Origin: Isurus oxyrinchus
Taxonomy: Eukaryota
Length of the DNA: 64,000 nucleotides
Assembly (NCBI GenBank): GCA_026770705.1
Contig: JANJGN010000557.1
Span: 124,001-188,000, forward strand
Reading direction: 5' to 3'
The notes under the pieces are model-generated. The model was given only the letters and a program-made list of their open reading frames with translations, had not been told where the DNA came from and searched no databases. Shown piece after piece: positions 7,840 to 57,712 of this stretch (within the stretch, counting starts at the first letter, position 1; each line of letters starts with the position of its first letter). A program made the translations under genes and the position numbers.

Positions 7840-8088
7840 TCAGTTTCGCTTGAATCTGATCTGTGCGTATTCCGTCTCCTCTTCCCTGTGGACAGACGCA
7901 TCACCACTGGGCACCCTGAAGACTTGGGGATTGGCGTAGAGAAGGTTGTCAGGATTGTCAGGGATTCCATGTCCAGCATCGCCTCCCACTGCACCTTCAG
8001 AGAGACCCCGGGGAGCTGGGGTCTCCCCCTCACTAGTTGTGTCTCTGGTTGTGTTCCGGGGCTCAGTAATCAGCACGTTCTGTTTACC
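7840..8088 (-). CDS. S1 final cytoplasmic exon with ITIM-like LLYANP and distal ITSM-like TEYAQI
   Basis: Acceptor tttctctgtag at 8090-8089; phase 0; 249 bp to TGA at 7842-7840; two-tyrosine layout like CD33-related Siglec tails. Confidence 0.88.
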   Translation of the reverse strand, partial: GKQNVLITEPRNTTRDTTSEGETPAPRGLSEGAVGGDAGHGIPDNPDNLLYANPQVFRVPSGDASVHREEETEYAQIRFKRN

Positions 8089-8236
8089 CTACAGAGAAAT
8101 GGAAACAGACGACATCCTCACATCATTTACTGGCACTGATAGGGTTAAATTATTGTGCAGCCTCGTTAGTGTCAGTCGTGGCTCAGTGGGTTTAACTGTC
8201 CTTCCCATGTCTTATGAAAGAAACCACCTAAGGCAT

Positions 8237-8812
8237 GTGCAGTGCTCCCTCAGTACTGACCCTCCGACAGTGCAGTGCTCCCTCAGTACTGACCCTCCGA
8301 CTGTGCAGCACTCCCTCAGTACTGACCCTCCGACAGTGCAGCACTCCCTCAGTACTGACCCTCCGACTGTGCAGCACTTCCTCAGTACTGACCCTCCGAC
8401 AGTGCAGCGCTCCCTCAGTACTGACTCTCCGGCAGTGCAGCACTCCCTCAGTACTGACCCTCCGACAGTGCAGCACTCCCTCAGTACTGACCCTCCGACA
8501 GTGCAGTGCTCCCTCAGTACTGACCCTCCGACAGTGCAGCACTCCCTCAGTACTGACCCTCCGACAGTGCAGCACTCCCTCAGTACTGACCCTCCGACTG
8601 TGCAGCACTTCCTCAGTACTGACCCTCCGACAGTGCAGCGCTCCCTCAGTACTGACCCTCCGGCAGTGCAGCACTCCCTCAGTACTGACCCTCCGACAGT
8701 GCAGCACTCCCTCAGTACTGACCCTCCGGCAGTGCAGTACTCCCTCAGTACTGACACTCCGGCAGTGCAGCACTCCCTCAGTACTGACCCTCTGTCAGTC
8801 CCGCACTCCCTC
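8237..8812 (+). repeat. 33-bp minisatellite array (about 17 units) in the last intron of S1
   Basis: Unit CAGTACTGACCCTCCGACAGTGCAGCACTCCCT; produces spurious repetitive ORFs. Confidence 0.95.
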
Positions 8813-8941
8813 GGTAATGGCTCTGGCGAGTGACGGCTTGGATTCTGCACACAGGTGCCTGGTGTGAGGCTCAATAATATGAACCTTGTAATCAGAGAGA
8901 GGATTAGAGAGAGAGATAGAGATGAAGGGACAGAGACAGAG

Positions 8942-9698
8942 TGTTATGAATCTATTAATGTATGTAATGTAATTGGAAATTGTCTATTTAGACAGAAGTT
9001 CAGTCTGTGGGTGTGTTTGTGTGTGTTTTAATTGGACTAAAGCCAGCCAGTCTGGGTACTTGGATGTCTAGTAGTCTTCAGATGTAAACAAAGAGGTAAA
9101 GTGGTAATTTGCATTTTTAAATAGAGCATTCAATGTCTGGGGGCGAAATGTTAAACCAATCAACATTTATATTACTAATAAAATTGAGACAATGAAAGGG
9201 GATTTATTGTTAGAAGAGATGGAGTTCAAAGGTCCTGATGATACAATGAGAATTTACATTCAAAGAGAAGCACTGGGTATAACTTGAGCAGTTTTGTGTG
9301 TGCAGAGCAGAGGCTTGTAACATCAAAGCAGCTGTAAGCCTACACCTGTCTGCAAAGGAACCAAAGTGAAAGGAACTTCATTTGGAATTTCTGAGGTGAA
9401 AATGCTTTGCTGGAATCTGCTTGAAGTCTATGTGTTGTCTTAGAGGAGATGAGGTAGAGAATTTGTTAAAAAGTTATGATAATACTAGTTTGTAGCCATG
9501 TGCATATGTTTAACTTGTGTAAATTAATAAATGTCTCATGTAGTTTGATATAAACCCATCTCGAGAACTGGTGGTCTTATTCCTGAATTTAGAGCTGCAT
9601 CTCAAACATTCCACTGGGAAATATAGGTTATGACAGTTGTTTAAAGTTTCCCTCTGGGATTTTAAACAACAGCCTTTACCAGTTGCTGTGTCATAACA
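8942..9698 (+). mobile_element. Solo LTR (Gypsy-like)
   Basis: Perfect 8-bp terminal inverted repeats TGTTATGA...TCATAACA; TATA-like and AATAAA inside. Confidence 0.7.
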
Positions 9699-9833
9699 GA
9701 GAGACAGCGTGATACTGAACCATTGCTGACTCCACAGGTACAAATCAGTGGATAACTGGGCTGGGAATCTGGGACACGTGTTGTCTACACACTGAGATTG
9801 AAGCTTTGGAGTGAGTGTAAACAGCTCCTGTAC

Positions 9834-9915
9834 CTGGTGATTCACAGAGAGTGGACTGGGGGTCAATGCAATATCACTGGTCCCTGAAACTCTCTCCTCC
9901 ATCGCTGTCTTTCTC
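9834..9915 (-). CDS. S1 first cytoplasmic exon (K)RKTAMEERVSGTSDIALTPSPLSVNHQ
   Basis: Acceptor ttatttcag, donor GTACAG; 82 bp, phase 2 to phase 0, fits both neighbouring exons. Confidence 0.82.
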
Positions 9916-11022: not shown

Positions 11023-11119
11023 TTTCTCACACAGATGAAGATGAAGATTCCAGCCAGGAAAACACTCAACATGATCCCAGCCGTGAACAATCCTACTGTC
11101 CATTTACTGGAGTCTCTAC
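11023..11119 (-). CDS. S1 transmembrane exon (G)RDSSKWTVGLFTAGIMLSVFLAGIFIFICVRK, uncharged TM
   Basis: Acceptor tttttacag at 11121-11120, donor GTAAGT at 11022; 97 bp, phase 1 to phase 2; about 24 hydrophobic residues followed by RK stop-transfer; too short for the ORF track. Confidence 0.88.
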
Positions 11120-12196: not shown

Positions 12197-13460
12197 TGTG
12201 TGTGCGTATGTCTGTGTGTGTGTGTATGTGTCTGTGTTTGTGTATGTGGATGTTTGTGTGTCTCTGTGTGTGTGTGTCTGTGTGTGTGCGTATTCCTGTG
12301 TGTGTGTCTGTGTTAGTCGATGTGGATGTGTGTGTGTGTCTGTGTGTGTGCGTATGTCTGTGTGTGTGTGTCTGTATGTGTGTGTGTGTGTCTGCNNNNN
12401 NNNNNNNNNNNNNNNNNNNNNNNNNNNNNNNNNNNNNNNNNNNNNNNNNNNNNNNNNNNNNNNNNNNNNNNNNNNNNNNNNNNNNNNNNNNNNNNNNNNN
12501 NNNNNNNNNNNNNNNNNNNNNNNNNNNNNNNNNNNNNNNNNNNNNNNNNNNNNNNNNNNNNNNNNNNNNNNNNNNNNNNNNNNNNNNNNNNNNNNNNNNN
12601 NNNNNNNNNNNNNNNNNNNNNNNNNNNNNNNNNNNNNNNNNNNNNNNNNNNNNNNNNNNNNNNNNNNNNNNNNNNNNNNNNNNNNNNNNNNNNNNNNNNN
12701 NNNNNNNNNNNNNNNNNNNNNNNNNNNNNNNNNNNNNNNNNNNNNNNNNNNNNNNNNNNNNNNNNNNNNNNNNNNNTGTCTCTGTGTGTGCAACTATGTG
12801 TGTCTCTGTCTGTGTGAGTGCATCTGTGTGTGTGTGTGTGCATATGTCTGTGTGTGTGTGTGTTTGTGTTTGTCGATGTGGATGTTTGTGTGTGTCTATG
12901 TGTGTGTGTCTGTCTGTGTGCGTATGTCTGTGTGTGTGTGTCTGTATGTGTGTGTGCGTGTGTGTGTCTGTGTTAGTNNNNNNNNNNNNNNNNNNNNNNN
13001 NNNNNNNNNNNNNNNNNNNNNNNNNNNNNNNNNNNNNNNNNNNNNNNNNNNNNNNNNNNNNNNNNNNNNNNNNNNNNNNNNNNNNNNNNNNNNNNNNNNN
13101 NNNNNNNNNNNNNNNNNNNNNNNNNNNNNNNNNNNNNNNNNNNNNNNNNNNNNNNNNNNNNNNNNNNNNNNNNNNNNNNNNNNNNNNNNNNNTGTGTGTG
13201 TTTACACGTGTGTGTGTGTGCGTGCATCGGTGTGTATGTGTCTCTGTGTGTGCATCTATGTGTATCTCTGTCTGTGTGTGTGCATCTGTGTATGTGTGTG
13301 CGTATGTNNNNNNNNNNNNNNNNNNNNNNNNNNNNNNNNNNNNNNNNNNNNNNNNNNNNNNNNNNNNNNNNNNNNNNNNNNNNNNNNNNNNNNNNNNNNN
13401 NNNNNNNNNNNNNNNNNNNNNNNNNNNNNNNNNNNNNNNNNNNNNNNNNNNNNNNNNNNN
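12197..13460. repeat. Degenerate (GT)n low-complexity tract with three N runs
   Basis: Directly visible; N runs 12396-12775, 12978-13191, 13308-13460. Confidence 0.95.
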
Positions 13461-13624: not shown

Positions 13625-13921
13625 CTTGCACAGTTAGTACGAGGGTCCGCTCCGATGAAACAGATGGATATCTCACTCTGCAGCTGAGATTGTGTCCGTG
13701 GTGTTTGAGTGATGGGATCAGGGTCAGAACAGAAGTATAGGTCAGAGTGACACCATGCTGAGTTACAGTGTTTGAGACTGATCCAGGTACGTCAGTGGGA
13801 GTGTCCCAGGTTAAGACAGGTGCTGCTGTTCCATTGCACGTTGTGTTGAAGGTGCAGCTTACATCCACACGCTTTCCTGCAATAATTTCAGCAGGGAATA
13901 TCATGGGTTTATCTGTGAAAT
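13625..13921 (-). CDS. S1 C-set Ig exon (DFTDKPMIFPAEI...CTFNTTCNG...LSCRVRYP...LTVQ)
   Basis: 297 bp, AG/GT bounded, phase 1-1; B-strand Cys, extra interdomain Cys, Trp and F-strand Cys as in Siglec domain 2. Confidence 0.92.
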
Positions 13922-14292: not shown

Positions 14293-14658
14293 CAGAAACG
14301 TGAAGCTGGGTTACAGGGTAATAGTTATGTCTCGGACCATTGTCAAATTCTATCCTGAAAAAATAAGGTCCTGCATCTTCCCGTGTGATGTTGTTTATAA
14401 TCAGAGAACAGTCGCCATCTTTCAGGTCTCCAGACAGTCGGGTCCGATGGTGGAACCGTGGTAACTCGTGACTGTGATCCTTGGAGTGAAAGGCTATAGA
14501 CGATGTTTCCCGTTCCTCATTATTAAACCAGACTCCACCTCGCGGTTGGTTTTCCAGACACGATGGATAACTGTAATGACACGGAATCTGTACACACGAA
14601 CCTTCCTGCACTGTCACCTCTCGTGGAGTGTCACCTTTCCACTCTTGTGAGGGTTCAT
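14293..14658 (-). CDS. S1 V-set exon V2 (DEPSQEWKG...CVQIPC...YFFRIEF...QLHVS)
   Basis: 366 bp open, phase 1-1; Siglec signatures: CVxxPC, DCSL, essential Arg in YFFRIE. Confidence 0.92.
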
Positions 14659-14714
14659 CTGGGGAGAGAAATATCAATATTTAACTCTGAATGGTTTGTG
14701 GATCCACTGAACCC

Positions 14715-18301: not shown

Positions 18302-18688
18302 CAGAAACATGAAGCTGGGTTTCAGGATAGTAGCTGTAACTATTGTTGCCGTCAAATTCTATTCTGAAATAATAATATCCTGCATCTTCCCATCTGATGT
18401 TGTTTATAATCAGGGAACAGTCGCCATCTTTCAGGTCTCCAGACAGCCGGGTCCGATGGTGGAACCATGTTAACTCGCGATTGTGATTCTTGGAGTGAAA
18501 TGCTATGATCCCTCTAGACCTTGTATTCCATGTATTCCATGTGTACCATATCACATACCAGATTCCGACACGTGCTCTCCCTACTAAACGTGCTGGATAA
18601 CTGTAATTACATGGAATCTGTACACACGAACCTTCCTGTGCTGTCACAAATCGTGGAGTGTTGCCTTTCCACTCTTGTGACAATCCAA
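18302..18688 (-). CDS. S1 V-set exon V1 (VGLSQEWKGN...WYTWNTWNT...YYYFRIEF...QLHVS)
   Basis: 387 bp open, phase 1-1, Siglec Cys pattern and essential Arg retained; most divergent V in the window. Confidence 0.9.
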
Positions 18689-23380: not shown

Positions 23381-23404
23381 ACAGTCTTGTTGCATGGAGT
23401 CATC

Positions 23405-23553: not shown

Positions 23554-23554
23554 A

Positions 23555-29292: not shown

Positions 29293-29589
29293 CTTGCACA
29301 GTTAGTACGAGGGTCCGCTCCGATGAAACAGATGGATATCTCACTCTGCAGCTGAGATTGTGTCCGTGGTGTTTGAGTGATGGGATCAGGGTCAGAACAG
29401 AAGTATAGGTCAGAGTGACACCATGCTGAGTTACAGTGTTTGAGACTGATCCAGGTACGTCAGTGGGAGTGTCCCAGGTTAAGACAGGTGCTGCTGTTCC
29501 ATTGCACGTTGTGTTGAAGGTGCAGCTTACATCCACACGCTTTCCTGCAATAATTTCAGCAGGGAATATCGTGGGTTTATCTGTGAAAT
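29293..29589 (-). CDS. S2 C-set Ig exon
   Basis: 297 bp open, phase 1-1, donor GTAATT. Confidence 0.88.
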
Positions 29590-29934
29590 CTAACAAACAG
29601 AGAATGGATCCTTTTAGAGAAATATAACGTGAAGCATCAGTTCAAATAGAAACCACAGTCCCACAAGAGAAAGCACTTTTACAAGGATGATATCAGAACT
29701 GAGAGGTTACAATGATCAGGAAAGATTTTCTTGCTCTTTGGCAGTAGTGTTTCTGTCTCTCAGCTTAATACACGTTCACTCCGAGACATGTGAATTGAGA
29801 ACACTGGATGAGAGAAGAGGCTCAGACCAGAGATTGGAGTTAAAAGCAGAATACTGTGGATGCTGGAAATCTGAAACAAAAACAAAAATTGCTGGAAAGA
29901 CTCAGCAGGTCTGACAGTATCAGTGGAGAGGAAG

Positions 29935-29975
29935 ACAGGGTTAACGTTTCGAGTCCGTATGACTCTTCATCAGAC
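29935..29975 (-). ncRNA. Minimal hammerhead-ribozyme-like motif in a Penelope-type repeat fragment (S2 V-C intron)
   Basis: Minus strand CTGATGA-A-GAGTC-ATACG-GACTC-GAAA-CGTTA; paralog at about 39280-39314 has GAAA changed to AAAA. Confidence 0.4.
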
Positions 29976-30448
29976 CAGAGGTTTGAGTTCACTGGCTTCT
30001 CATTTCCTCAGTGATCTGGGTGATTTATTACATTGTGGTTTGTTGGATCTTGCTGTGCACAAACTGCCTGCTGTGTTTAACATCTGTGACTACAATTCAG
30101 GAATAATTTCATTGGCTGTGAAGGGATTTGGATCCTCCTGAGGTGGTAAATTGCGCTGCAGAAATGCACATCTTTCTTTTATCGATACGTCAGACTTTTA
30201 AACAGGACAGGAGAGATTGATGGGAGTGGATAACCTGATAATACAGTTAATGCTTTTCATCATTGATATTAAAGTGAGTATTAGAGGTTGCTTTAGGACT
30301 GAACTGGAAGCCATCACCAGGTTATTGAGAATCAGACAATGTGTTAAAATAAGTTGTGTTTTGTGTTAATATGTAAACGTCACAGTTTGTGTTATTTCCC
30401 ATTGAGTGTTGAATGTGAATTGTTGAGTAATTATAACACAGCACTTAC

Positions 30449-30817
30449 CAGAAACGTGAAGCTGGGTTACAGGGTAATAGTTATGGCTCGGACCATTGTC
30501 AAATTCTATTCTGAAAAAATAAGGTCCTGCATCTTCCCGTGTGATGTTGTTTATAATCAGGGAACAGTCGCCATCTTTCAGGTCTCCAGACAGCCGGGTC
30601 CGATGGCGGAACCGTGGTAACTCGTGACTGTGATCCTTGGAGTGAAAGGCAATGGGAGCCCAGGGAATCTGTGTCTCATTATTAAACCAGAGTCCACCTC
30701 GTGGTTGATTTTCCAAATGTGCTGGATAACTGTAATGACATGGAATCTGTACACACGAACCTTCCTGCGCTGTCACCTCTCGTGGAGTGTCACCTTTCCA
30801 CTCTTGTGACAGTCCAA
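30449..30817 (-). CDS. S2 V-set exon, intact, essential Arg present
   Basis: 369 bp open, AG/GT bounded, phase 1-1. Confidence 0.9.
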
Positions 30818-31677
30818 CTGGGGAGAGAAATATCAAATATTTAACTCTGGATGGTTTGTAGATCCACTAGACTCGATATCCACTCCCTCCATCACTGGGG
30901 CACAGTGGCTGCAGTGTGGACCATCTACAGGACACACATGGAACTCCCCAAGGTTTCATAATGGATGGAAGAGAATCCTGGACACAGGAGTGGACAACTT
31001 CATTCTACATTGGCTCATGGTCCTCAGGACACTGTTTAGTGAAGCCAGTCTTCCACCCAACACAGTGTCTACAAGACACACAGGGAAACTGTGTAAACAT
31101 CTCATCTCTCTAAACTGACTGGTTTGTCTTCGGTTTAACTTTCAGTTATTTTACTTCCTTATTAGGTTGCTATGGTGAAACTGTGCAGGAAGTGTGAGGG
31201 CTGGACTCTCTGTCTATTCTCACTGCAGCTGTGATGTAGTCGTGGTGATTTGCAGTAAAATGAAACCCTCTGATCTCCTACATCCCGAGGTTTAGGGAGT
31301 GAATTCCAGAGCTCAGGCCCCAGGCAGCTGAAGGCCCGGCCGCCAGTATTGGAGTGATGGGAATCGAGGGATGGTCAAGAGGCCAGAATTGGAGTAACAC
31401 AGAGATCTGGGACGTTGGTTGGGAGAGTTGCAGGAGGTTACAGAGATAAGGAGGCAGTGTGAGGCAATGGATGCATTTGAACAAAGAGATGTGAATTTTA
31501 AGTTTGAGATGTTGTAGGACCAGGAGTCAGATAGTTTAGGGGTGATGGGTGAATGGGACTTGGTGTGAGGTTGTACACTGCCTCACTGCTGAATCAGTTC
31601 CCAATCACAGCTCAATAAGAATGATCTTTTACAAAGACTATTCACCATAAATCTGTCCGAGCTGACAATGATATTAC

Positions 31678-31717
31678 CTTGGAGAAGTGACAGGAGGAAG
31701 TAAGATTTCCCGATCAT
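31678..31717 (-). CDS. S2 leader exon MIGKSYFLLSLLQ
   Basis: 40 bp; joins V to give signal peptide MIGKSYFLLSLLQVGLS followed by QEW. Confidence 0.85.
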
Positions 31718-36325: not shown

Positions 36326-36349
36326 ATGAGATTGTTGCTGTACAAAGCT

Positions 36350-36489
36350 TTAAACAGTCTGTCGACGTCCTTTCACTGTTTGTCTCTCCCAGACACAGAC
36401 TCCAGCGATAATGATAACCACAGCCACAAGGAATATCACAGCTCGTATTCCCAGGATCAGGATCACGTGCAGAATCTCTCCTCCACTGT
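36350..36489 (-). CDS. S3 activating-type TM exon SGGEILHVILILGIRAVIFLVAVVIIIAGVCVWERQTVKGRRQTV*
   Basis: Acceptor gtgttctctag; phase-1 frame open to TAA at 36352-36350; Arg inside the TM. Confidence 0.8.
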
Positions 36490-39400
36490 CTAGAGAACAC
36501 ACAGAAAGAAATCATCACTGACTCTCCGCTTTCAATCTCTCACTCTGGCTGAACAATCAAGCTTCATATCACTGCAACATTTGCTGTAATATTGACCCAT
36601 CCACTGGGATTCAATGTGGAATGAATGTTTTCACTGTAAACACTCTAAGAGTGGACAATCGGAACTTTCCCCTTAGCGTGGAACATTGGTGAGAATGGAT
36701 CATTGTGCTGTTGGACTCTCTGTCCAATGTTTCTCTCCATCGCTGTGTACAGGATTGTGCTGTAGAAAATTCTGGAAACGTTTAGTGCAGGGTGGAAATC
36801 CATCTCAGACGTGTGTGCGAATCAGGCAGGATCGAGATGGACTCCCCCACGGACTTACACACCCCACTTAATAAACAGTTCCAATCTTTACCCAGAGGGA
36901 GGGGAGAATGTGGAACTCGCTCCCACAGGGAGTGGTTGAGGTGAACAGTATCGATGTATTTAAGGGGCAGGAGGGTCGGTAACCAGAGGGACACAGATTG
37001 ACAAACCGGAGGGGGAGATGAGGAGAATTTGTTTTGACAGAGCGAGTTGTTGTGATCTGGAAGGTGCTGCCTGAAAGGGCGGTGGAAGCAGATTCAATAG
37101 GAACTTTCAAAAGGGAAATTGGATAAACACTTGAAGGAAGAAGATGGGGGCAAAGTGGAGTGGTGGTTAGTGGATCTGATGGGATAGAACATTGAAAGAC
37201 CTGGCACAGGCTCAATGGGCTGAATGGCCTCCTACTGTGCTGTATCATTCTCCGCTTCCATGATCTCTCCCCCAGTCAGTAACCACTCCAGATCCCTCTT
37301 GAAGGTGACAGAGAAACAGCAACCACCACACCCACTGACAGCACATTCCCGAGGATCACTACTCTCTGGGAAAAGATGAACTCCCCAACATCCAGCCTAT
37401 TCCTGCTTCCCAGAGAGTGTAAACCCTTCAGGGAGGCACTGAGGAAGTTTTCAATAAAATGACATCAAATCTACCGTTTGAGAAATAATTGAATTCCGAT
37501 GAACTCACAGCTTGTGTAGCAAACTGGGAAGTGGAGTTGCTGGGAAAGCTGGGAAACACAAGGATTAAGGGCTACAATGCCACCACTGGTGGGAGGCTGT
37601 AACTACAGCGTGACGTTTACATAGGCAATCATCATTACAAACAGGGGCAGTGGACATAATGGGAATTATGTGCACGGAAATAGTGAGAACACTATGTAAG
37701 CTTTTCACCAGCAGGAATTCTCTTCCTAAACCTCTCCAACTCTCTCTTACTCTCAGATTCACAAAGAAAATCACACAGAATCAGATAAGGAAGAGTTGGG
37801 TTGGTGATTCGTCAAAGGTTAGGTTTCAGGAAGCTTCTTAAAGGGAGAGAGAGAGTTGGAGACGCAGAGAGTATCTGTGAGAGCCTCTATGCATCTGAGT
37901 GTCTGTAATAGTAATTTCCATATTCTTCCATAAATATGAATGGGAACACAAATCCCAGAATTCAGGCCAACTCTCCAGTGCAGTACTGAGGGAGGTCAGG
38001 TAACCCATGAGGGAGTGAGTGTTAGTGTTTGTGTGTGAGTGTGTCTTTGTGTGTGGTCATATATGTGTGTCTGCTTGTGTCTATTTAGTTGTGTATGTTC
38101 GATGGTGTTTGTGTAGTGTTCAAATCTGAGAGAGATATTGAAGTCTCTATAACTCAAGTTCCACAGTGATGGTTATGAACCCATCCACTGCTCCATGTTC
38201 ATTCTCTGCCACACACTGATAGTCTCCAGTGTCCCTGGATGTAACGTGAGGAATCACCAATCACAGCTAATTTTTGGAACTTGTTCTGTTCATTTGGACA
38301 TTCAGATGTCATGGCAGGAATCAAGAAGCCCGTTCACAGGATTACCAACAGAAAGTGAACAACAATTTATACTTAATGGGAAGAGAGTGCTGATTGGTTG
38401 GCAAGTGGTCTCTGATAGGTGGAGGTGTTGCCATGGAGAATGGTGTGTGCGAGATGTAAAGTTTAGACAGCTTGTCTCTTCATTCAGCAATAATCATATA
38501 AAGATCAATTAACTTCTATCGACTTTGAAGCACTTAGAGAGGCCTTAGAATGTGGATACTGAGAATGGGCTGCACTGTCAGAGGGTCAGCGCTGAGCGAG
38601 TGCTGATGTAGAATGAAAGGTGTATGTAATTACCTTGCACAGTTAGTACGAGGGTCCGCTCCGATGAAACAGATGGATATCTCACTCTGCAGCTGAGAGT
38701 GTGTCCGTGGTGTTTGAGTGATGGGATCAGGGTCAGAACAGAAGTATAGGTCAGAGTGACACCATGCTGAGTTACAGTGTTTGAGACTGATCCAGGGACG
38801 TCAGTGGGAGTGTCCCAGGTTAAGACAGGTGCTGCTGTTCCATTGCACGTTGTGTTGAAGGTGCAGCTTACATCCACAGGCTTTCCTGCAATAATTTCAG
38901 CAGGGAATATCGTGGGTTTATCTGTGAAATCTAACAGACAGAGAATGGATCCTTTTAGAGAAATATAACGTGAAGCATCAGTTCAAATAGAAATCACAGT
39001 CCCACAAGAGAAAGCACTTTTACAAGGATGATATCAGAACTGAGAGGTTACAATGATCAGGAAAGATTTTCTTGCTCTTTGGCAGTAGTGTTTCTGTCTC
39101 TCAGCTTAATACACGTTCACTCCGAGACATGTGAATTGAGAACACTGGATGAGAGAAGAGGCTCAGACCAGAGATTGGAGTTAAAAGCAGAATACTGTGG
39201 ATGCTGGAAATCTGAAACAAAAACAAAAATTGCTGGAAAGACTCAGCAGGTCTGACAGTATCAGTGGAGAGGAAGACAGGGTTAACGTTTTGAGTCCGTA
39301 TGACTCTTCATCAGACCAGAGGTTTGAGTTCACTGGCTTCTCATTTCCTCAGTGATCTGGGTGATTTATTACATTGTGTTTGTTGGATCTTGCTGTGCAC

Positions 39401-41640
39401 AAACTGCCTGCTGTGTTTAACATCTGTGACTACAATTCAGGAATAATTTCATTGGCTGTGAATGGATTTGGATCCTCCTGAGGTGGTAAATTGCGCTGCA
39501 GAAATGCACATCTTTCTTTTATCGATACGTCAGACTTTTAAACAGGACAGGAGAGATTGATGGGAGTGGATAACCTGATAATACAGTTAATGCTTTTCAT
39601 CATTGATATTAAAGTGAGTATTAGACGTTGCTTTCGGACTGAACTGGAAGCTATCACCAGGTTATTGAGAATCAGACAGTGTGTTATAATAAGCTGTGTT
39701 TTGTGTTAATATGTAAACGTCACACTTTGTGTTATTTCCCATTGAGTGTTGAATGTGAATTGTTGAGTAATTATAACACAGCACTTACCAGAAACATGAA
39801 GCTGGGTTACAGGGTAATAGTTATGGCTCGACCATTGTCAAATTTTATTCTGAAAAAATAAGGTCCTGCATCTTCCCATCTGATGTTGTTTATAATCAGG
39901 GAACAGTCGCCATCTTTCAGGTCTCCAGACAGCCGGGTCCGATGGTGGAACCATGGTAACTCGTGACTGTGATCCTTGGAGTGAAAGGCAATGGGAGCCC
40001 ATGGAATCTGATTCTCATTATTAAACCAGACTTCACCTCGCGGTTGATTTTCCAAATGTGCTGGATAACTGTAATGACATGGAATCTGTACACACGAACC
40101 TTCCTGCGCTGTCACCTCTCGTGGACTGTCACCTTTCCACTCTTGTGACAGTCCAACTGGGGAGAGAAGTATCAATATTTAACTCTGGATGGTTTGTAGA
40201 TCCACTAGACTCGATATCCACCCCCTCCATCACTGGGGCACAGTGGCTGCAGTGTGGACCATCTACAGGACACACAGGGATCTCCCCAGTGTTTCACAAT
40301 GGATAGAAGAGAATCCTGGACACAGGAATGGACAAGTTCATTCTACATTGGCTCATGGTCCTCAGGACCCTGTTTAGTGAAGCCAGTCTTCCACCCAACA
40401 CAGTGTCTACAAGACACACAGGGAAACTGTGTAAATATCTCATCTCTCTACACTGACTGGTTGAGCTTCGGTTTAACTTTCAGTTATTTTACTTCCTTAT
40501 TGTGGTTGCTATGGTGAAACTGTGCAGGAAGTGCGAGGGCTGGACTCTCTGTCTATTCTGACTGCAGCTGTGATGTGGTCGTGGTGATTTTCAGTAAAAT
40601 GAAACCCTCTGATCTCCTACATCCCGAGCTTTAGGGAGTGAATTCCAGAGCTCAGGCCCCAGGCAGCTGAAGGTCCGGCCGCCAGTATTGGAGTGATGGG
40701 AATCGGGGGATTGTCAAGAGGCCGGAATTGGAGTAACACAGAGATCTGGGACGTTGGTTGGGAGAGTTGCAGGAGGTTACAGAGATAAGGAGGCAGTGTG
40801 AGGCAATGGATGCATTTGAACAAAGAGATGTGAATTTTAAGTTTGAGATGTTGTAGGACCAGGAGTCAGATAGTTTAGGGTTGATAGGTGAATGGGACTT
40901 GGTGTGAGTTTGTACACTGGCTCACTGCTGAATCGGTTCCCAATCACAGTTCAATAAGAATGATCTTTTACAAAGGCTATTAACCATAAATCTGACCGAG
41001 CTGTCGATGATATTACCTTGGAGAAGTGACAGGAGGAAGTAAGATTTTCCAATCATTATCCACTCCCAGATATTTCATCAGCTTCTCACTCTGAAACTCT
41101 GAAAGGGAAAGGAGTTAATGAGACCTCACCTCTTGTCCACCAGCTCTCGAGAGATCAGAAATGCTCTTAGACAATGTCTTCACAGAATAATTTGATTCTC
41201 TGTGGGATGATAGGTGTTCTGCAGAGAGTTACAAGGCTTTAAGAATGAAAAACAACAAAGGACTTGCATTTCTATAGCACCATTCACCACATCAGGGCAT
41301 CCCAAAGTATCTACAGTTCCCTCATCCCTTGAGCTAGAAAGATTTTCTGTACAACAGACTTGAGCCTCACACCCAGATCTCAATAATCATAGAAATCTTT
41401 CAAAGGCATCAATCATTGGAATCTGTCTTTATAAAGTCACAACATCAACAAATGACGGTGTTGGTCGTGGAAGTGAATTCCAATCGTTCCGTTACTTACC
41501 CAGGACCTGTCTGACTGCTCGCCTGGGGAGGAACTGCCCACACGCTCTGCTTGGGCTGAATGACCTCTTCCTGTGCTGCTCCCTCTGTGTATTTAATGAG
41601 AAAGGGTTGATGTGTCTCTGTGAGACAAAATGAGGAAGTT
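36350..41640 (-). pseudogene. S3 Siglec-like pseudogene: leader 41017-41056, V 39789-40156, C 38634-38930, dead Ig3 38158-38310, TM 36350-36489
   Basis: V exon is 368 bp (1-bp deletion at about 39830, frameshift); Ig3 remnant has stops and a lost donor; a single indel could also be a sequencing error. Confidence 0.78.
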
Positions 41641-42545: not shown

Positions 42546-43298
42546 ACATTGCGATTCCTGCTCTGCTCTATCAGCCCCTTGGCTGGACATAAAAGCCCCT
42601 ATGTTAATGTTCAAAAACTGTTATTAATTGTATTCTGGTCACCATTTTCTTTAAAAAACAGATTATCTGATTGTCATCAGAATACCTTTCTATGGGATCC
42701 GGCTGTGCGTCATCTAGACTGTTCCAGCGAATGTATAATGAAGGGTGTCCGTACTTACCTTGCACAGTTAGTACGAGGGTCCGCTCCGATGAAACAGATG
42801 GATATCTCACTCTGCAGCTGAGAGTGTGTCCGTGGTGTTTGAGTGATGGGATCAGGGTCAGAACAGAAGTATAGGTCAGAGTGACACCATGCTGAGTTAC
42901 AGTGTTTGAGACTGATCCACGTACGTCAGTGGGAGTATCCCAGGTTAAGACAGGTGCTGCTGTTCCATTGCACGTTGTGTTGAAGGTGCAGCTTACATCC
43001 ACACGCTTTCCTGCAATAATTTCAGCAGGGAATATCGTGGGTTTATCTGTGAAATCTAACAGACAGAGAATGGATCCTTTTAGAGAAATATAACGTGAAG
43101 CATCAGTTCAAATAGAAATCACAGCCTTAAGATTAGAGATAGATGGGAGTGGATGACCTGATAACATTGATGGACACATTCAATACATTTAATCATTGAT
43201 ATTAAAGTGAGTATTAGAGGTTGCTTTTGGACTGAATGGAAGCTATCACCAGGTTATTGAGAATCAGACTCTGCGTTATACTAAACTGTGTTTTATGT

Positions 43299-44022
43299 TG
43301 TGATGAAACTATGATATTTTTCAGAATAATATTGTCGGCTTATGGGAATGAATGTGGATGGTTCCGTCTGTGGGTCTGATTTAATTGAATTTGAGTCAGA
43401 TCAACTATGAGGTTAAAATTATCAATAGAGTTTGGTGCAAAGCAGACTTCTGAAATGGGGATGGACAAGCTAGGATGAGGGTTCCACAGAAAAGCTGTAA
43501 ATGAAATTTTAGATCAGTAAAGAGAATGTTTGATTGTCAAAGGGTAGTTGGGTGTTTATAATTAACAAGATAACCAGGGCAAGGTTATTATGTGTATTCT
43601 TCCCAAAAGGAATGGGCCATATTGACAACATGAAAGATTTTTATACTATGGGAAAAGTGTATTTACCAAGACAGGTGCAACAGTGGGATTTTATACATTG
43701 GAGAGAGAGAAACCAACATAAAGAAGGATGGAAGGTTATGTGGGAGGGGGACATGAATTTCTTGAAAGGTACAGTAGGTGAAGCAGCCTTGGGTAAAACG
43801 TTTCTGTTCACTTTTGCTGCTCCAGTACTTAAAGGTGTGTTAAAAGACTTTGGAATTACACTGTCAAGTGGGTGCTGCAGTAACCTTGCCGGATTCCCAT
43901 TTCCATTTAAGATTTATTGGGATTGTTGCCTTCAAGGGGGTGTGTAGTTGGAAATTATGCTTGGCCAAGTTCCCTTTGTGGATTCTCTCCACTTGGCACA
44001 CATCACCTGCCATGTCATAACA
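43299..44022 (+). mobile_element. Solo LTR in the S4 V-C intron
   Basis: TGTGATGA...TCATAACA termini, approximate 4-bp TSD atgt/gtgt; absent from paralogous introns. Confidence 0.75.
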
Positions 44023-45721
44023 GTGTTATTATGTAAACGTCAGAGTTTGTGTTCATTCCCATTGAGTGTTGAATGTGAATTGTTGAGTAATTATAACACA
44101 GCACTTACCAGAAACGTGAAGCTGGGTTACAGGGTAATAGTTATGGCTCGGACCATTGTCAAATTTTATGCTGAAAAAATGAGGTCCTGCATCTTCCCGT
44201 CTGATGTTGTTTATAATCAGGGAACAGTCACCATCTTTCAGGTCTCCAGACAGCCGGGTCCGATGTTGGAACAGTGGTAACTCGCGATTATTATCCTTGG
44301 AGTGAAAGGCTATAAAGAATCTTATCAAGACTTTGTCATTAAATCAGATTCCAATTTGCAGTTGGTTTTCCAGACACGATGGGTAGCTGTAATGACATGG
44401 AATCTGTACACACGAATATTCCTGCGCTATCACCTCTCGTGGAGTGTCACCTTTCCACTCTTGTGACAGTCCAACTGGGGAGAGAAATATCAATATTTAA
44501 CTCTGGATGTTTTGTAGCTTCACTAGACTCGATATCCACCCCTTCCATCACTGGGGCACAGTGGCTGCAGTGTGGACCATCTACAGGACACACAAGGAAC
44601 TCCCCAAGTTTTCACAATGGATGGAAGAGAATCCTGGACACAGGAGTGGACAACTTCATTCTACATTGGCTCATGGTCCTCAGGACCCTGTTTAGTGAAG
44701 CCAGTCTTCCACCCAACACAGTGTCTACAAGATACACAGGGAAACTGTGTAAATATCTCATCTCTCTACACTGACGGTTTACCTTTCAGTTAATTCATTT
44801 CATTATGGTGAAACTGTGCAAGAAGTGTGAGGGCTGGACCCTCTGTCTATTCTGAATGCTGCTGTGATGTAATCATGGCCTCTCAGGGAATGGACTATTG
44901 GAGTTTATTCATCCCTGAATTTTGATTTTGAATTCCAGAGCTCGGGGCCCAGGCAGCTGAAGGCACGGCCGCCAATAATGGAATGATGGGAATCGGGGGA
45001 TGGTCAAGATGCTGGAATTGGAGGAGTGCAGAGATCTCGGAGGGTTGTAGGTACTGGAGGAGATTACAGAAATAGGGAGGGTTGTAATGGTGGACGAGGT
45101 TACAGAGAAAGGGAGGTTTGTAGGGGCTGGAGAAATTAACAGAGATAGCGAAGGATATAGGGGCTGGAGTTGGTTATAGAGTTAGGGAGAGTGGTAGGGG
45201 CTGGAGGAGGTTACTGAGATAGGGAGGATTGTAGGAGCAGGGCGAGGTTACAGAGGTAGGGAGTAATATATGTGCTGGAAGATGTTACAGGGATAGGGAG
45301 GTTGGTATGGGCTGGAGGAGGTAACATGGATAGGGAGAGTTGCAAAATTTTGGAGGGATTTCTACAGGATGACCTGGATTTTAATTTTCTGTTGCTGTCA
45401 GACAGGGAGTCAGTGTATATCAGTGATCACAGGGGTGATGGGTGAATGGGACTTGGTGTGAGTTTGTACACTGGCTCACTGCTGAATCGGTTCCCAATCA
45501 CAGCTCAATAAGAATGATCTTTTACAAAGACTATTAACCATAAATCTGTCCGAGCTGACGATGATATTACCTTGGAGAAGTGACAGGAGGAAGTAAGATC
45601 ATTGTCCACTCGCAGATATTTCATCAGCTTCTCACTCTCAAGCTGTGAAAGAGAAAGGAGTTAATGAGACCTCACCTCTTGTCCGACAGCTCTCCAGAGA
45701 TCAGAACTGCTTTTAGACAAT

Positions 45722-47019: not shown

Positions 47020-47727
47020 CATGTTCTGCACTGTCGGAGGGTCAGTATTGTTGGAGTGCTACCCTGTCAGAGGGTCAGTACTGAGGGAGTGCTGCACTGT
47101 TGGCGCGTCAGTATTGAGGTGTGCTGCACTGATGGAGGATAAGCAGCGAGGGAGTGCTGCTCTGTTTGAGGGACAGCTGTGAGGGAGTTCTGCACTGTCA
47201 GAGTGTTGGCACTGAGGGAGTGCTGCACTGTCGGCCGGTCAGAACTGAGGGAGTGCTGCACTGTTGGAGGGTCTAAACTGAGAGAGTGCTGCACCCGTTG
47301 GAGGGTCTGAACTGAGGGAGTGCTGCACTGCTGGAGGGTCTAAACTGAGGGAGTGCTGCAGTGTCGGAAGGTCTGAACTGAGGGAGTGCTGCACTGTTGG
47401 AAGGTATAAACTGAGGGAGTGCTGCACTGTCGGAGGGTCTGAACTGAGGGATTGCTGCACTGTAGGAGGGTCTAAACTGACGGAATGCTGCACTGTCGGA
47501 AGGTCTGAACTGAGGGAGTGCTGCACTGCTGGAGGGTCTGAACTGAGGGAGTGCTGCACTGTTGGAGGGTCTGAACTGAGGGAGTGCTGCACTGCTGGAG
47601 GGTCTAAACTGAGGGAGTGCTGCACTGTTGGAGGGTCTGAACTGAGGGAATGCTGCACTGCTGGAGGGTCTAAACTGAGGGAGTGCTGCACTGTTGGGGG
47701 GTCTGAACAGAGGGAGTGCTGCACTGT
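47020..47727 (-). repeat. 33-bp minisatellite array (TCTGAACTGAGG variant) between S5 and S4
   Basis: Direct repeats. Confidence 0.95.
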
Positions 47728-49153: not shown

Positions 49154-49293
49154 TCAAACAGTCTGTCGACTTCCTGTCACTGTTTGTCTCTCCCAGACAC
49201 AGACTCCAGCGATAGTGATAACCACAGCCACAAGGAATATCACAGCTCGTATTCCCAGGATCAGGATCACGTGCAGAATCTCTCCTCCACTGT
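49154..49293 (-). CDS. S5 activating-type TM and short-tail exon (H)SGGEILHVILILGIRAVIFLVAVVITIAGVCVWERQTVTGSRQTV*
   Basis: Acceptor at 49295-49294; phase 1 matches Ig3; Arg codon 49249-49247; TGA at 49156-49154; donor GTCAGT just after the stop. Confidence 0.87.
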
Positions 49294-50997: not shown

Positions 50998-51279
50998 GTT
51001 CCACAGTAATGGTTAGGAACCCCTCCACTGCTCCATGTTCATTCTCTGCCACACACTGATATTCTCCAGTGTCCCTGGATGTAACGTGAGGAATCACCAA
51101 CCATAGCTCATTGTTGGAACTTGTTCTGTTCATTGGGACATTAAGATGTCGCCACGTCAGGTTAGAAGCTGGGAAGCTCTCGACAGAGCAGATTATCACT
51201 GCAGAATTCCCCTCAATTATATTGATCGATGAAGCGTTCATCATATCTGGAGAAGTAATTGAGAGATTCCGTGGTGCGT
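50998..51279 (-). CDS. S5 third Ig (C2/I-set) exon YAPRNLSIT...CSVESFPASNLTW...DTGEYQCVAENEHG...TITVE
   Basis: 282 bp open, phase 1-1; only intact copy in the window. Confidence 0.92.
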
Positions 51280-51411: not shown

Positions 51412-51752
51412 TCAGTATTGAGGGCGTGCTGCACTGTCAGAGGGTCAGTACTGAGGGAGTGCTGCACTGTCAGAGAGTCAGTACTGAGGGAGTGCTGCAC
51501 TGCCAGAGGTTCAGTGCTGAGGGAGTGCTGCACTGTCAGAGGGTCAGTCCTGAGGGAGTGCTGCACTGTAGGAGGGACAGTACTGTGGGAGTGCTGCACT
51601 GTAGGAGGGTTACTGCTGAGGTAAAACTGCACAGTCAGAGCGTCAGTTCTGATTGACCAGTGCAATGTTGGAGGAGCACTACTGAGGGATCATTATACTA
51701 TTAGAGAGACAGTAATGAGGGAGTGCTGCACTGTAGAAGGGTCAGTGCTGAG
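51412..51752 (-). repeat. 33-bp minisatellite array in the S5 C-Ig3 intron
   Basis: Direct repeats. Confidence 0.9.
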
Positions 51753-52023
51753 GAGGCAAACACGCTGTTATGTGTGTACTATAGGCCTCCTGTGATAATG
51801 TGGAGTGCCAGGTACCTTTAAGAGAATACAAGTGGATAAACCATGTGACAGTACTGACCAATCACTGGACAGTGTGGGCCACTGGTTAACTGTAAGTCTA
51901 GAGCTGGAGGTGGCTGTGGGAGCAGGCAAGGATTTAGTGCTCTGCCCTCTGTTACAATAAATAATCAGCTTGTTCTAATGTCGGTCTCTCTTGGTTATTG
52001 ATAGCGAGCATCAGCTAAGAATA

Positions 52024-54210: not shown

Positions 54211-54507
54211 ATTGCACCGTTAGTACGAGGGTCCGCTCCGATGAAACAGATGGATATCTCACTCTGCAGCTGAGAGTGTGTCCGTGGTGTTTGAGTGATG
54301 GGATCAGGGTCAGAACAGAAGTATAGGTCAGAGTGACACCATGCTGAGTTACAGTGTTTGAGACTGATCCAGGTACGTCAGTGGGAGTGTCCCAGGTTAA
54401 GACAGGTGCTGCTGTTCCATTGCACGTTGTGTTGAAGGTGCAGCTTACATCCACACGCTTTCCTGCAATAATTTCAGCAGGGAATATCGTGGGTTTATCT
54501 GTGAAAT
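54211..54507 (-). CDS. S5 C-set Ig exon
   Basis: 297 bp open, donor GTAAGT; last base T joins AC to give YAP of Ig3. Confidence 0.92.
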
Positions 54508-55818
54508 CTAACACACAGAGAATGGATCCTTTTAGAGAAATATAACGTGAAGCATCAGTTCAAATAGAAACCACAGTCCCACAAGAGAAAGCACTTTTAC
54601 AAGGATGATATCAGAACTGAGAGGTTACAATGATCATTAAAGAATTGTCTATTTTTACACTTGTTGAATCTCTGTCACTCAGATTAATACACTCTCACTC
54701 AGTGACCCTTGATTTGACCAGACTGGGTGAGGGTGGAGGAACAGCTCACAGCTCGGGGAGAGCAGACTCAGCATTTGGAAAAGGATATAGAGACACTGGA
54801 GAGGGTGGTAAAAAGCTTCACAAGGATGATCTCAGCAATGTGAGGCTTTACCTATCAGGAGAGGATGTACAGGCTGGGTCTCTGTTCCCGTGAACAGAGA
54901 AGGTTGAGGGGTGACCTCATTTGACCTTTGAAGTAATGAAAGGTTTTGATCGAGTAGACATGGAGAGAGTGTTTCCACTCCTCACAATGAACAAAACCAG
55001 AGGCTGACAATATAACATCCTCACTAATAAATCCAATGGGGAATTCAGGAGAAACTTATTTACCCAGAGAGTGGGGAGAATGTGTGCTTCAAGAATCACT
55101 TCATTGGCTGTGAATTGATTTAGGATCGTCCTGAGGTGGTGAAAGGCGCTATGGAAATGCGAGAATTGCTTTTGTATTTTGAAAGCAGGTTTCCAAGGAT
55201 GAGATGGGAACTGAGAGGTCACAACAATCAGCAGCAACTTTCCTATTTTCAAACTTGGTGGGGAATGTGTCACTGAGCTGAATACACTTTCACTCCCAGA
55301 CCCTTGAATTGCCAACACTGGGGTGTGGGTGATGGAGCAGTCCACAGCTCATGGAACCCTGGCTCATCATTCTCTCAGAGATCTGGGTCACTGATCCCAT
55401 TGCCCTCTGTGGGAGCTTCCTGTGCACAAACTCACTGCCACGTTAGTCACTATACTTCAAGAATTTCTTCATTGTCTGTGAAATGATTTGAAGTTTGCTG
55501 AGGTGGTGTAAGGCGCTATAGGAATGCACATCCTTCTTTTGTCAAATTGTTAGACATTTAAAAAGCATTAGGTAGACTGATGGGAGTGGATAACCTGATA
55601 ACATTGATGGACACAGTCAATACATTTAATCATTGATATTAAAGTGAGTATTAGAGGTTGCTTAAGGACTGAACTGGAAGCTTTCACCAGGTTATTGAGA
55701 ATCAGACGGTCTGTTATAATAAACTGTGTTTTGTGTTAATATGTAAACGTCACAGTTTGTGTTATTTCCCATTGAGTGTTGAATGTGATTTGTTGAGTAA
55801 TTATAACACAGCACTTAC

Positions 55819-56187
55819 CAGAAACGTGAAGCTGGGTTACAGGGTAATAGTTATGGCTCGGACCATTGTCAAATTCTATTCTGAAAAAATAAGGTCCTGC
55901 ATCTTCCCGTCTGATGTTCTTTATAATCAGGGAACAGTCGCCATCTTTCAGGTCTCCAGACAGCCGGGTCCGATGGTGGAACCGTGGTAACTCGTGACTG
56001 TGATCCTTGGAGTGAAAGGCAATGGGAGGCCAGAATTTGTATTTCTCATTATTAAACCAGATTCCGACTTGTCGTTTGTTTTCAAAATGTGCTGGATAAC
56101 TGTAATGACACCGAATCTGTACACACGAACCTTCCTGCGCTGTCACCTCTCGTGGAGTGTCACCTTTCCACTGTTGTGACAGTCCAA
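55819..56187 (-). CDS. S5 V-set exon, intact, essential Arg present
   Basis: 369 bp open, phase 1-1. Confidence 0.92.
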
Positions 56188-57080
56188 CTGGGGAGAGAAA
56201 TATCAATATTTAACCCTGGATCCTCATTGTCTAAGGAATCTCTTTGGATCCTCATTGTCTAAGGGATTATTTCTGATCCAAACCCCATATTGTTGTCTTG
56301 TTGATTCCGATGCAGCATTGTAGACTGACTTGTCCCCAAGCTCAGCACTGACCCTACTCCAGCAGACACTGTGAAACACACTAACAAAGCGCCTCTAGCC
56401 TGAGCTCTGCATGTGTCGAGAGAAAGACAAATATACAAACTGAATATTGACCCATTTACTCACGGACAGCTTTACCTTCCTTCTCTCTTTCAGTTATCTT
56501 GCTCCCTTATTGAAGTTTCTAGCAAGGTGAGAATGGACAGGAAGTGTGACACTGAACAGCCTGTCTATTCTAGGAGCTGCTGTGCTGTCTTCATGGGAAA
56601 TTCTGACTAAAATCAGCAAAAGACACTAATTTCAGGCCATTGCTGTCAGAGTCCTAGCCACAAGATAGACTTCATCCCCTGAATTTTGTGTCCGATTTTC
56701 TACTCAAACATTCACCTCCGCACACACCCACCCCGACCCCACAAGTCACTCGCTGACCTACACTGGCTTCCAGTCCAACAACACCTCGATGTGATTATTT
56801 TCACACTTGATTTCCAATCCCTCCATCACTCCGCTCCACTCCCTGTCTCTGTAAGTCCCTCCAAACCTACAACCCTCTGTGATCTCTGCTCTCCTCCAAT
56901 TCTGCTGTCAGACAGGGAGTCAGTGTATATCAGTGAGCACAGGGGTGATGGGTGAATGGGACTTGGTGTGAGTTTGTACACTGGATCACTGCTAAATCAG
57001 TTCCCAATCACAGCTCAATAAGAATGATCTTTTACAAAGACTATTAACCATAAATCTGTCTGAGCTGATGATGTTATTAC

Positions 57081-57120
57081 CTTGGAGAAGTGACAGGAGG
57101 CAGTAATATTTCCCGATCAT
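57081..57120 (-). CDS. S5 leader exon MIGKYYCLLSLLQ
   Basis: 40 bp; total CDS 40+369+297+282+140 = 1128 nt = 375 aa plus stop. Confidence 0.88.
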
Positions 57121-57537
57121 TGTCCACTCCCAGATATTTCAACAGCTTCTCACTCTCAAACTCTGAAAGAGAAAGGAGTTAATGAGACCTCACCTCTTGT
57201 CCGACAGCTCTCGAGGGATCAGAACTGCTTTTAGACAATGTCTTCACAGATTAATTTGATTCTCTGTGGGATGATAGGTGCTCTGGCGAGAGTTACAAGG
57301 CTTGAAAAAGAAAAACAATGAAGGACTTGCATTTCTATATCGCCTTTCACCTGCTCAGGACACCCCAAAGCTCATGTCCCTGCTCTTCCCTCATCCCTTG
57401 AGCTAGAAAGATGTTCTGTACAACAGACTTGAGCCTCACACCCAGATCTCAATAATCAGTAGAAATCTTTCAAAGGCATCAATCATTGGAATCTGTCTTT
57501 ATAAAGTCACAACATCAACAAAGGATGGTGTTGGTGG

Positions 57538-57712
57538 TGGAAGTGAATTCCAATCGTTCCGTTACTTACCCAGGACCTGTCCGACTGCTCGCCTGGGGAG
57601 GAACTGCCCACACGCTCTGCTTGGGCTGAATGACCTCTTCCTGTGCTGCTCCCTCTGTGTATTTAATTAGAAAGGGTTGATGTGTCTCTGTGAGACAAAA
57701 TGAGGAAGTAGC
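57538..57712 (-). promoter_or_regulatory. S5 promoter and non-coding exon 1
   Basis: Donor at 57569, TATA-like at about 57660-57667, GAGGAAGT at 57702-57709. Confidence 0.6.

Follow-up and report, generated by a model that had tools for sequence, protein, structure and literature searches.

The 64-kb stretch of DNA analyzed here (Isurus oxyrinchus, contig JANJGN010000557.1, positions 124,001 to 188,000; hereafter, the window) is vertebrate DNA with a G+C content of 43 to 50%, many copies of a 33-bp minisatellite, and fragments of long interspersed nuclear elements (LINEs). Siglec-type genes lie in tandem across it, all on the minus strand. We focus on S1, which is probably of inhibitory type, and on S5 and S3, whose transmembrane (TM) exon encodes an arginine (Arg-TM). 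Six V-set exons were located, all on the minus strand: A (S1, 14658-14293), B (18688-18302), C (30817-30449), D (S3, 40156-39789), E (44474-44109), and F (S5, 56187-55819). C2-set exons (“C1,” 297 nt each) lie on the same strand at 13921-13625, 29589-29293, 38930-38634, 43055-42759, 54507-54211, and 62646-62350 (n = 6), with one inverted copy on the plus strand near the right end (63267-63563). Every immunoglobulin (Ig) exon is in phase 1-1. A hydrophobicity scan with blastn and tblastn self-searches of the window returned one neutral TM exon, one tyrosine tail exon, and two Arg-TM exons, and neither program detected similarity between the neutral TM exon and the Arg-TM exons. The original prediction for this locus was a cluster of paired inhibitory and activating receptors, in which S1 and S5/S3 have similar V exons and near-identical C exons but unrelated TM and tail exons; these searches and the exon identities given below agree with that description. 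Throughout, window exons were searched, aligned, and folded singly; for analyses of two domains at a time, we took database proteins from related sharks.

The S1 gene can be followed on the minus strand from a V2 exon (14293..14658, phase 1-1, with the essential Arg in the motif YFFRIE) through its C1 exon (13625..13921, phase 1-1) to a TM exon (11023..11119) that has a phase-1 acceptor and a donor reading AA followed by gtaagt. The TM exon encodes a stalk and an uncharged TM segment (GRDSSKWTVGLFTAGIMLSVFLAGIFIFICVRK); its translation, GLFTAGIMLSVFLAGIFIFICV, contains no charged residue and is 77 to 97% identical to the TM of models from the white shark, Carcharodon. Exon-by-exon mapping of white-shark XP_041037177 (P0152) then revealed a small cytoplasmic exon (9834..9915, RKTAMEERVSGTSDIALTPSPLSVNHQ), which matches both Carcharodon P0152 and P0158. 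The last exon (7840..8088, coding from 8088 to 7843) reads NLLYANPQVF and, further on, EEETEYAQIRFKRN, which includes TEYAQI, before a stop at 7842-7840; it is 84% identical to the P0152 tail. The distal motif, TEYAQI, fits an immunoreceptor tyrosine-based inhibitory motif (ITIM)-like or switch motif (ITSM) position. Splice phases fit along the whole chain, with the TM exon ending in AA before gt, the next exon supplying G, and the last junction in phase 0. The neutral TM and two tyrosine motifs originally ascribed to S1 were thus both recovered. We also asked whether the S1 tail is statistically homologous to CD33-like tails of mammals or turtles and rejected this, as the motifs alone align (BLAST E, 0.02 to 0.2).

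Upstream of these exons, V-set exon B (18302..18688, minus strand) is an intact phase 1-1 exon with the motif YYYFRIE and most likely encodes V1, the first V domain, of S1. In a V-domain tree, it clusters with V1 of the two-V inhibitory models Carcharodon P0159 and P0166 and Cetorhinus P0004 (Shimodaira-Hasegawa-like approximate likelihood ratio test, 94). Its WYTWNTW insert is also present in V1 of Carcharodon P0158 (LOC121274079), whose V2 is S1-like. Both LOC121274079 and the basking-shark protein XP_078389734 (P0004) have two V domains, the first with a Trp-rich insert as in exon B and the second like the S1 V domain. Because these two-V models and the tree place exon B as V1, the gene model that we predict as most likely for S1 is V1-V2-C1-TM-cyt1-cyt2. 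The intron between C1 and TM contains three assembly gaps in TG-rich microsatellite (12396..13460; N runs at 12396-12776, 12978-13192, and 13308-13460). None of them touches an exon: 164 bp separate the C1 donor (13624-13623) from the nearest N, the TM acceptor lies at 11121-11120, and the frame across the gaps is set by splice phases (both phase 1) rather than by gap length. An additional exon may lie within the unread gap letters. A hidden Ig exon at this position was nevertheless rejected as a candidate, since the extra domain of Carcharodon P0159 is unmatched anywhere in the readable letters of the window; in two S1-orthologue-like white-shark models, C1 is joined directly to the TM exon.

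S5 is the complete Arg-TM gene. On the minus strand, it comprises a leader exon (57081..57120, MIGKYYCLLSLLQ plus G), an intact V-set exon (55819..56187, YFFRIE), a C1 exon (54211..54507), a second C2/I-set exon (C2b, 50998..51279) that is the sole complete copy of its kind in the window, and an exon encoding the Arg-TM and a 12-residue tail with its stop (49154..49293). The chain leader-V-C1-C2b-Arg-TM is intact, with all junctions in phase. S3, also on the minus strand, has a leader exon (41017..41056), a V-set exon (39789..40156, FFRIK) whose frame is shifted by a 1-nt deletion after 39829, a C1 exon (38634..38930), and an Arg-TM exon with the 12-residue tail and stop (36350..36489); its chain is leader-V-C1-Arg-TM, and C2b survives as a 5′-truncated relic. 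S3 is probably a decaying, younger copy of the activating type. The Arg-TM coding segments of S3 (36489-36353) and S5 (49293-49157) are 98% alike and encode ILHVILILGIRAVIFLVAVVI(I/T)IAGVCVW followed by ERQTVKGRRQTV or ERQTVTGSRQTV and a stop. Both copies therefore carry the two features originally attributed to them, a basic residue inside the TM (ILILGIRAVIFLV) and a short, motif-free tail, ERQTV(K/T)G(R/S)RQTV, of 12 residues and no tyrosine. The earlier account of S3 thus holds, with the correction that its V exon carries the 1-nt deletion, and that of S1 holds but had missed the small cytoplasmic exon and the probable V1 exon. We also considered whether the two forms could be alternative TM exons of one gene and rejected this, as >25 kb separates the Arg-TM exons from S1, and the interval contains whole sets of leader, V, and C1 exons.

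We next compared the Ig exons with known families. Pfam detected V-set and Ig_CD22 on every V exon and C2-set_2 on every C1 exon. Against the PDB, the best 18 sequence matches of the S1 V exon were all Siglecs (Siglec-5, Siglec-8, Siglec-10, CD33, MAG, and sialoadhesin at E values of 3e-14 to 1e-11), and Siglec-7 and Siglec-15 also ranked ahead of any non-Siglec chain. The C1 exon by itself matched domain 2 of MAG and CD33. For an AlphaFold2 model of the S5 V exon (predicted local distance difference test score, 87), the 46 top-ranked fold matches were all V domains of Siglecs (TM-score, 0.80 to 0.88). Over V plus C2, a white-shark orthologue-like protein matched human CD33 at E 1.8e-26, with the linker HVSDFTDKP against HVTDLTHRP. 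The motif YFFRIE of the S1 V exon lines up with YFFRVE of Siglec-5 and YFFRME of CD33, and its strand-F Arg (R102, nearly invariant in the family alignment) is kept in S1 V2, S1 V1, copy C, S5, and S3 and is lost in copy E. Cysteines C21, C26, and C84 of the V domain are invariant in that alignment, their C-x4-C...C pattern aligns with Siglec-5 and CD33, and SCTFNTTC...SCRV of C1 aligns with TCSVSWAC...TCQV of CD33, an extra Cys pair; these positions suggest Siglec-type disulfides in both domains. We predict from the strand-F Arg that the S1 and S5 heads would bind sialic acid.

In a V+C2 tree built without bona fide mammalian MAG, CD22, Siglec-1, or Siglec-15, the elasmobranch genes grouped together (99/99), apart from a clade of tetrapod CD33-related genes (100/99), with no supported placement among the elasmobranch family, the CD33-related clade, a shark MAG/SMP-like gene, and teleost genes. 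Domain and fold matches place S1, S5, and S3 in the Siglec family, and we file them there rather than as CD33-related Siglecs because this tree leaves the relation to the CD33-related clade without support. Of the comparisons that had been called for, the sequence searches thus upheld Siglec membership, and the phylogeny gave no supported position relative to CD33-related Siglecs and MAG.

To identify the closest relatives, we searched the V exon against 1.84 billion representative sequences and then looked up the names of the matches. The nearest were RefSeq models of sharks and rays, which carry automatic and inconsistent NCBI names (Siglec-8, -10, -11, -12, -13, and -14, CD33-like, and MAG-like). 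With a full-length query, 120 of 120 among the matches listed were elasmobranch, and the closest came from Carcharodon carcharias and Cetorhinus maximus, in keeping with the cartilaginous fish that had been proposed as the probable source. Shark RefSeq models (for example, Carcharodon XP_041037177 and Scyliorhinus torazame XP_072325011) show the same exon chains and both tail types as the window. The S1 chain is reproduced by Carcharodon XP_041037177 (P0152) and LOC121274079 (P0158), and the same Arg-TM and short tail end Carcharodon P0169, P0173, and P0184, Scyliorhinus P0086, P0181, P0197, and P0006, and Chiloscyllium P0023. Exon by exon, the proteins were 77 to 97% identical to the window for the Carcharodon inhibitory model P0152 and 80 to 88% for the S. 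torazame Arg-TM model P0086. The Arg-TM exon, including the short tail, is 80 to 93% identical to the window in Carcharodon, two Scyliorhinus species, and Chiloscyllium, so that this feature is kept in three shark orders (lamniform, carcharhiniform, and orectolobiform). Identity of the V-C1 head between shark orders was 64 to 84%, and to any characterized Siglec only about 30 to 35%. The paired layout predicted for the window, with its Arg-TM exon, therefore recurs in gene models of three shark orders. Because the split into activating and inhibitory forms falls within a clade of elasmobranch genes only, these sequence comparisons support an origin that is independent of the pairs of primates but ancient among sharks, which bears out the suggestion of an independently evolved or very ancient system.

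We next asked how the heads have stayed alike. The V exon of S1 is 89.9% identical in DNA to that of S5 (∼82% in protein) and 90.7% to that of S3. Across copies, DNA identity is 90 to 92% for the V exons and 98.7 to 99.7% for the C1 exons. The likeness of S1 to the other copies is limited to the V-intron-C1 block, with 300 bp upstream and 160 bp downstream unrelated; within the block, the V exon and intron differ by 8 to 12% and C1 by only 0.3 to 1.3%. Among all seven copies, synonymous divergence (dS) of C1 was 0 to 0.04, versus 0.18 in V, and the intron diverged by 10 to 22%. The contrast between C1 and V/intron was significant overall (Fisher P, 1e-8 to 1e-23) and on synonymous sites alone (1e-3 to 1e-4). 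Across species, V-C1 heads group by taxon, not by tail type, and a single clade of Arg-TM ectodomains, with the group defined by TM type, was rejected (approximately unbiased test, P = 0.00043). Near-zero dS in C1 and rejection of that clade support gene conversion, as had been proposed for the heads, with the C1 exon homogenized across the seven copies. Of the 23 protein differences between the S1 and S5 V exons, 15 fall within alignment columns 29 to 60, which correspond by alignment to Siglec-5 to the B-C loop, strand C, and C-C′ loop. In published Siglec structures, this is the face that determines specificity.

RNA contigs from four runs, belonging to four studies and two organism labels, were placed on one 4.8-kb stretch, 36300-41100 (S3). 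The joints 39789→38930 (V to C1) and 38634→36489 (C1 to Arg-TM) occurred in 4/4 runs, and 41017→40156 (leader to V) in 3/4 (X1, X4, and X7). All joints read CT..AC on the plus strand, that is, GT..AG on the gene strand, exactly at the predicted exon limits, and the C1 to Arg-TM joint passes over the S3 C2b relic. A leader-V-C1-Arg-TM splice form therefore exists in this lineage. We rejected assignment of the contigs to S3: the base missing from its V exon is present in every contig, and all S3-private sites read as copies C and F and the family consensus. Because the contigs carry consensus letters and not S3-private ones, they establish the splice form in the lineage but do not show any particular copy of the window to be expressed. 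The question raised with the original prediction, whether spliced RNA joins the Ig exons to either TM exon, is thus answered for the Arg-TM exon, the RNA stretch having covered S3 only; for the inhibitory form, the exon chain is backed by RefSeq models of related sharks. At position 36385, organism B runs read C, so that the short tail has EGQ in place of ERQ, the white-shark form (WEGQTVKGSRQTV), and the organism A run keeps ERQ. On account of this difference, organisms A and B seem to represent two lamniform species, or two populations, that are related.

The remaining copies are incomplete. Copy C (29293..31717, minus strand) has a leader (31717-31678), V (30817-30449), and C1 (29589-29293), then a 5′-truncated C2b relic, and its TM exon is absent; it is a 96.8% identical duplicate of the 5′ part of S3, with homology to S3 ending at 27478. 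At this clean breakpoint, intron sequence of the S3/S5 type (that found upstream of the Arg-TM exon, from 27478 upward) abuts sequence of the intron-1 type of other genes, and 26714-27483 matches 922-1659 and 56425-56998 (intron 1, starting ∼80 bp after the leader donor). A deletion or unequal crossover at 27478 seems to have taken out the TM exon of copy C and, with it, the promoter and leader of S1, which is the next gene. Because of that loss, transcription could run in phase from copy C into S1 as a single hybrid unit; this is speculative, the alternative being a mis-join. Copy E (42759..45601, minus strand) is a pseudogene whose leader has an 8-nt deletion and whose V exon has an in-frame stop and has lost the Arg (FFSIK), with C1 intact. 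Copies G and H (61740..64000) consist of a C1 exon and C2b relic only, one set in each arm of an inverted duplication (arms 61913-62870 and 63044-64000, 94 to 98% identical, centered near 62957).

Repeats surround these units. Minisatellite arrays of 33 bp, ∼7 kb in total and in both orientations, flank nearly every gene unit (8237-8816, 32525-35004, 41880-42547, 47026-47727, 51412-51753, and 57925-60399) and produce long spurious open reading frames (STDPPTVQHSL...). A 37-bp tandem repeat (GGGCTGGAGGAGGTTACAGAGATAGGGAGGGTTGTAG-like) occurs between the S1 V exons (16476-17043) and upstream of copy E (45039-45342). A C-terminal fragment of a LINE reverse transcriptase lies ∼0.3 to 0.8 kb 3′ of the Arg-TM exon in both S3 (35674-36099) and S5 (48383-48808), and the same conserved fragment recurs at 61049-61537 (plus strand), where copy G has no TM exon. 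Further reverse transcriptase fragments are found at 52486-53666 (plus strand) and 23751-25596 (minus strand), the latter as a 380-residue open reading frame in the long intron that precedes the V1 exon of S1. Downstream of S1, a promoter/leader unit is tandemly duplicated (1-922 and 1768-2675). Leader exons with MIGKSYFLLSLLQ were observed at 1779-1740 and at the window edge (1-12), and neither has a V exon inside the window; for this reason, the cluster extends past the left edge.

Paired Siglecs are viewed as a recent mammalian answer to pathogens cloaked in host sialic acid. The architecture of the shark genes is consistent with a similar arrangement. S1 would present two sialic-acid-type V-set domains and one C2 domain above an uncharged TM, with a tail containing a degenerate ITIM (LLYANP) and an ITSM/ITIM-like motif (TEYAQI); S5 would present a V-C1 head much like that of S1, an additional Ig domain, a central TM Arg, and a 12-residue tail lacking a signaling motif. 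Both heads would bind sialylated ligands through the conserved strand-F Arg. Once phosphorylated on tyrosine, S1 may recruit SH2 phosphatases and damp the cell, and the TM Arg of S5 may pair with an Asp-bearing adaptor of DAP12 or FcRγ type that carries an immunoreceptor tyrosine-based activation motif, triggering the cell. If S1 and S5 are co-expressed, then mimicry of host sialic acid by which a pathogen silences cells via S1 would also trip S5. Recurrent gene conversion would keep the heads alike, most clearly at C1, as the B-C, C, and C-C′ face of V diversifies.

The explanation that competes best with this model is that the Arg-TM copies are not activating at all. They might be tail-less decoys or membrane-anchored or shed lectins that act without an adaptor, in an ordinary birth-and-death Ig family with one inhibitory member. 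Several copies are plainly decaying (E, G/H, and the frameshifted S3), and a short tail alone is no proof of signaling. However, the Arg-TM exon and tail are at least as conserved between shark orders as the V-C1 head (80 to 93% against 64 to 84%), which argues for a constrained interaction of the Arg-TM, and a central basic residue in a TM is costly unless paired. We consider decoys or adaptor-free lectins rather unlikely. A second explanation, that the heads are Siglec-like in fold but recognize a ligand other than sialic acid, so that pairing serves another ligand system, draws on the low identity to characterized Siglecs and on the elasmobranch-only clade, whose tree position relative to CD33-related Siglecs, MAG, and teleost genes lacks support. 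Against it stand the conserved strand-F Arg, three-Cys pattern, and CD33-like linker, and the best fold matches, which are sialoside-bound Siglec structures; a different ligand is, in our judgment, a distinctly improbable alternative to sialic acid. Finally, we give very little weight to an assembly artifact in which collapsed or mis-joined repeats account for the missing TM of copy C, the missing leader of S1, the S3 frameshift, and the G/H palindrome, for although minisatellite arrays, N gaps, and 85 to 98% identical duplications run throughout the region and no RNA contig agrees with the assembled sequence at the S3 deletion, both TM/tail types, the exon chains, and their co-occurrence recur in independent shark assemblies and annotations, and RNA joints agree to the base with predicted exon limits.

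Several observations weigh against a working inhibitory/activating pair in the window as assembled. No S1 leader exon was found in 18689-27600 by a motif scan, two mismatch-tolerant DNA pattern searches, or a scan for an ATG, hydrophobic stretch, and phase-1 donor; for this reason, S1 may rely on another promoter or may be disabled in the present haplotype or assembly. Its proximal tyrosine motif, LLYANP, has Pro at +3 in the window and Carcharodon alike, hence is no canonical ITIM. The ITIM/ITSM tail is widespread among shark models, and most other sharks have LLYA(S/N)INF...TEYAQIRF, relative to which the LLYANPQVF of the window and Carcharodon is degenerate. The frameshift in S3 may be real or an assembly error. 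In addition, the RNA does not come from S3 in its assembled form, and the contigs cannot pin one locus. Taking these points together with the exon structure, conversion pattern, and shark gene models, we estimate a probability of roughly 70% that the window is part of a tandem, fast-rearranging Siglec-family cluster in a lamniform shark, with S1 of inhibitory type, S5 of activating type, and their heads kept alike.

Beyond the window, the comparative data raise the hypothesis that a pairing of activating and inhibitory Siglecs was in place in sharks before the galeomorph orders split (lamniform, carcharhiniform, and orectolobiform sharks being those sampled) and has persisted there, independent of primates, with a dedicated Arg-TM exon and ongoing conversion of the heads; we regard this as an even bet. 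Fish are said to have only Siglec-1, CD22, MAG, and Siglec-15, with inhibitory CD33-related Siglecs absent from fish genomes (PMC7226832), and in the whale-shark genome paper Siglecs are just an entry in a family list (PMC8455134). A literature search found no paper on shark Siglecs, a shark paired system, or shark DAP12, although many journals lay outside its coverage, so this is no proof of absence; the statement that no description in sharks was known has thus stood so far, even though relatives carry automatic Siglec names. As far as could be found, the arrangement as a paired Siglec system in sharks has not been described before. Because individual relatives are already auto-named as Siglecs in public shark annotations, the advance is one of interpretation and evolution rather than a new type of protein. 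The window and shark gene models together show a large elasmobranch Siglec expansion that has both ITIM/ITSM-tailed and Arg-TM members and whose heads are being homogenized. If the hypothesis is correct, the decoy-versus-mimicry logic at the sialic-acid “self” signal would date to early jawed vertebrates, and the rule that fish lack inhibitory CD33-like Siglecs would hold for bony fish only. It would also provide a second, independent case of the paired-Siglec design, in a lineage apart from mammals since the origin of jawed vertebrates, where one could test the design by its ligand specificity, its choice of adaptor, and the selection acting on the C-C′ face.

Known Siglecs resemble the shark genes in different parts. 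Siglec-15 is activating and has kept a basic TM residue from fish to mammals (PMC7226832), as in the shark Arg-TM genes; however, that residue is Lys instead of Arg, Siglec-15 is unpaired, and the shark V domain matches it at 37 to 41 bits, versus 85 to 96 for CD33, Siglec-5, or MAG. Siglec-12 has tandem N-terminal V-set domains like those predicted for S1, and several shark relatives are so named by NCBI for that reason, but the name was assigned automatically and orthology is without evidence. Among solved structures, CD33 (Siglec-3) gives the best match over V plus C2 and has the Cys pattern, essential Arg, and domain linker in common with the shark proteins; its tail is colinear with the shark tail, with a membrane-proximal LxYA.. 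and then a distal TEY(A/S)x(I/V). The tree gives no support for placing the shark family within the tetrapod CD33-related clade or next to it, and the tails are alike in motifs only. The human Siglec-11/Siglec-16 pair (PMC5701461), like the shark genes, combines an inhibitory and an activating member whose extracellular regions are homogenized by gene conversion, with pseudogene alleles involved; that pair is primate specific and recent, whereas the shark Arg-TM exon is common to lamniform, carcharhiniform, and orectolobiform sharks. Human Siglec-5/Siglec-14 corresponds in the following respects: near-identical N-terminal Ig domains via gene conversion, ITIM and ITIM-like tyrosines in one member versus a basic TM and short tail in the other, and neighboring positions in a cluster. 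Unlike Siglec-5/Siglec-14, the shark pair lies inside an elasmobranch-only clade and appears to have arisen independently, its C2 domain is the most homogenized with V differing by ∼10%, and its inhibitory gene is probably a two-V gene.

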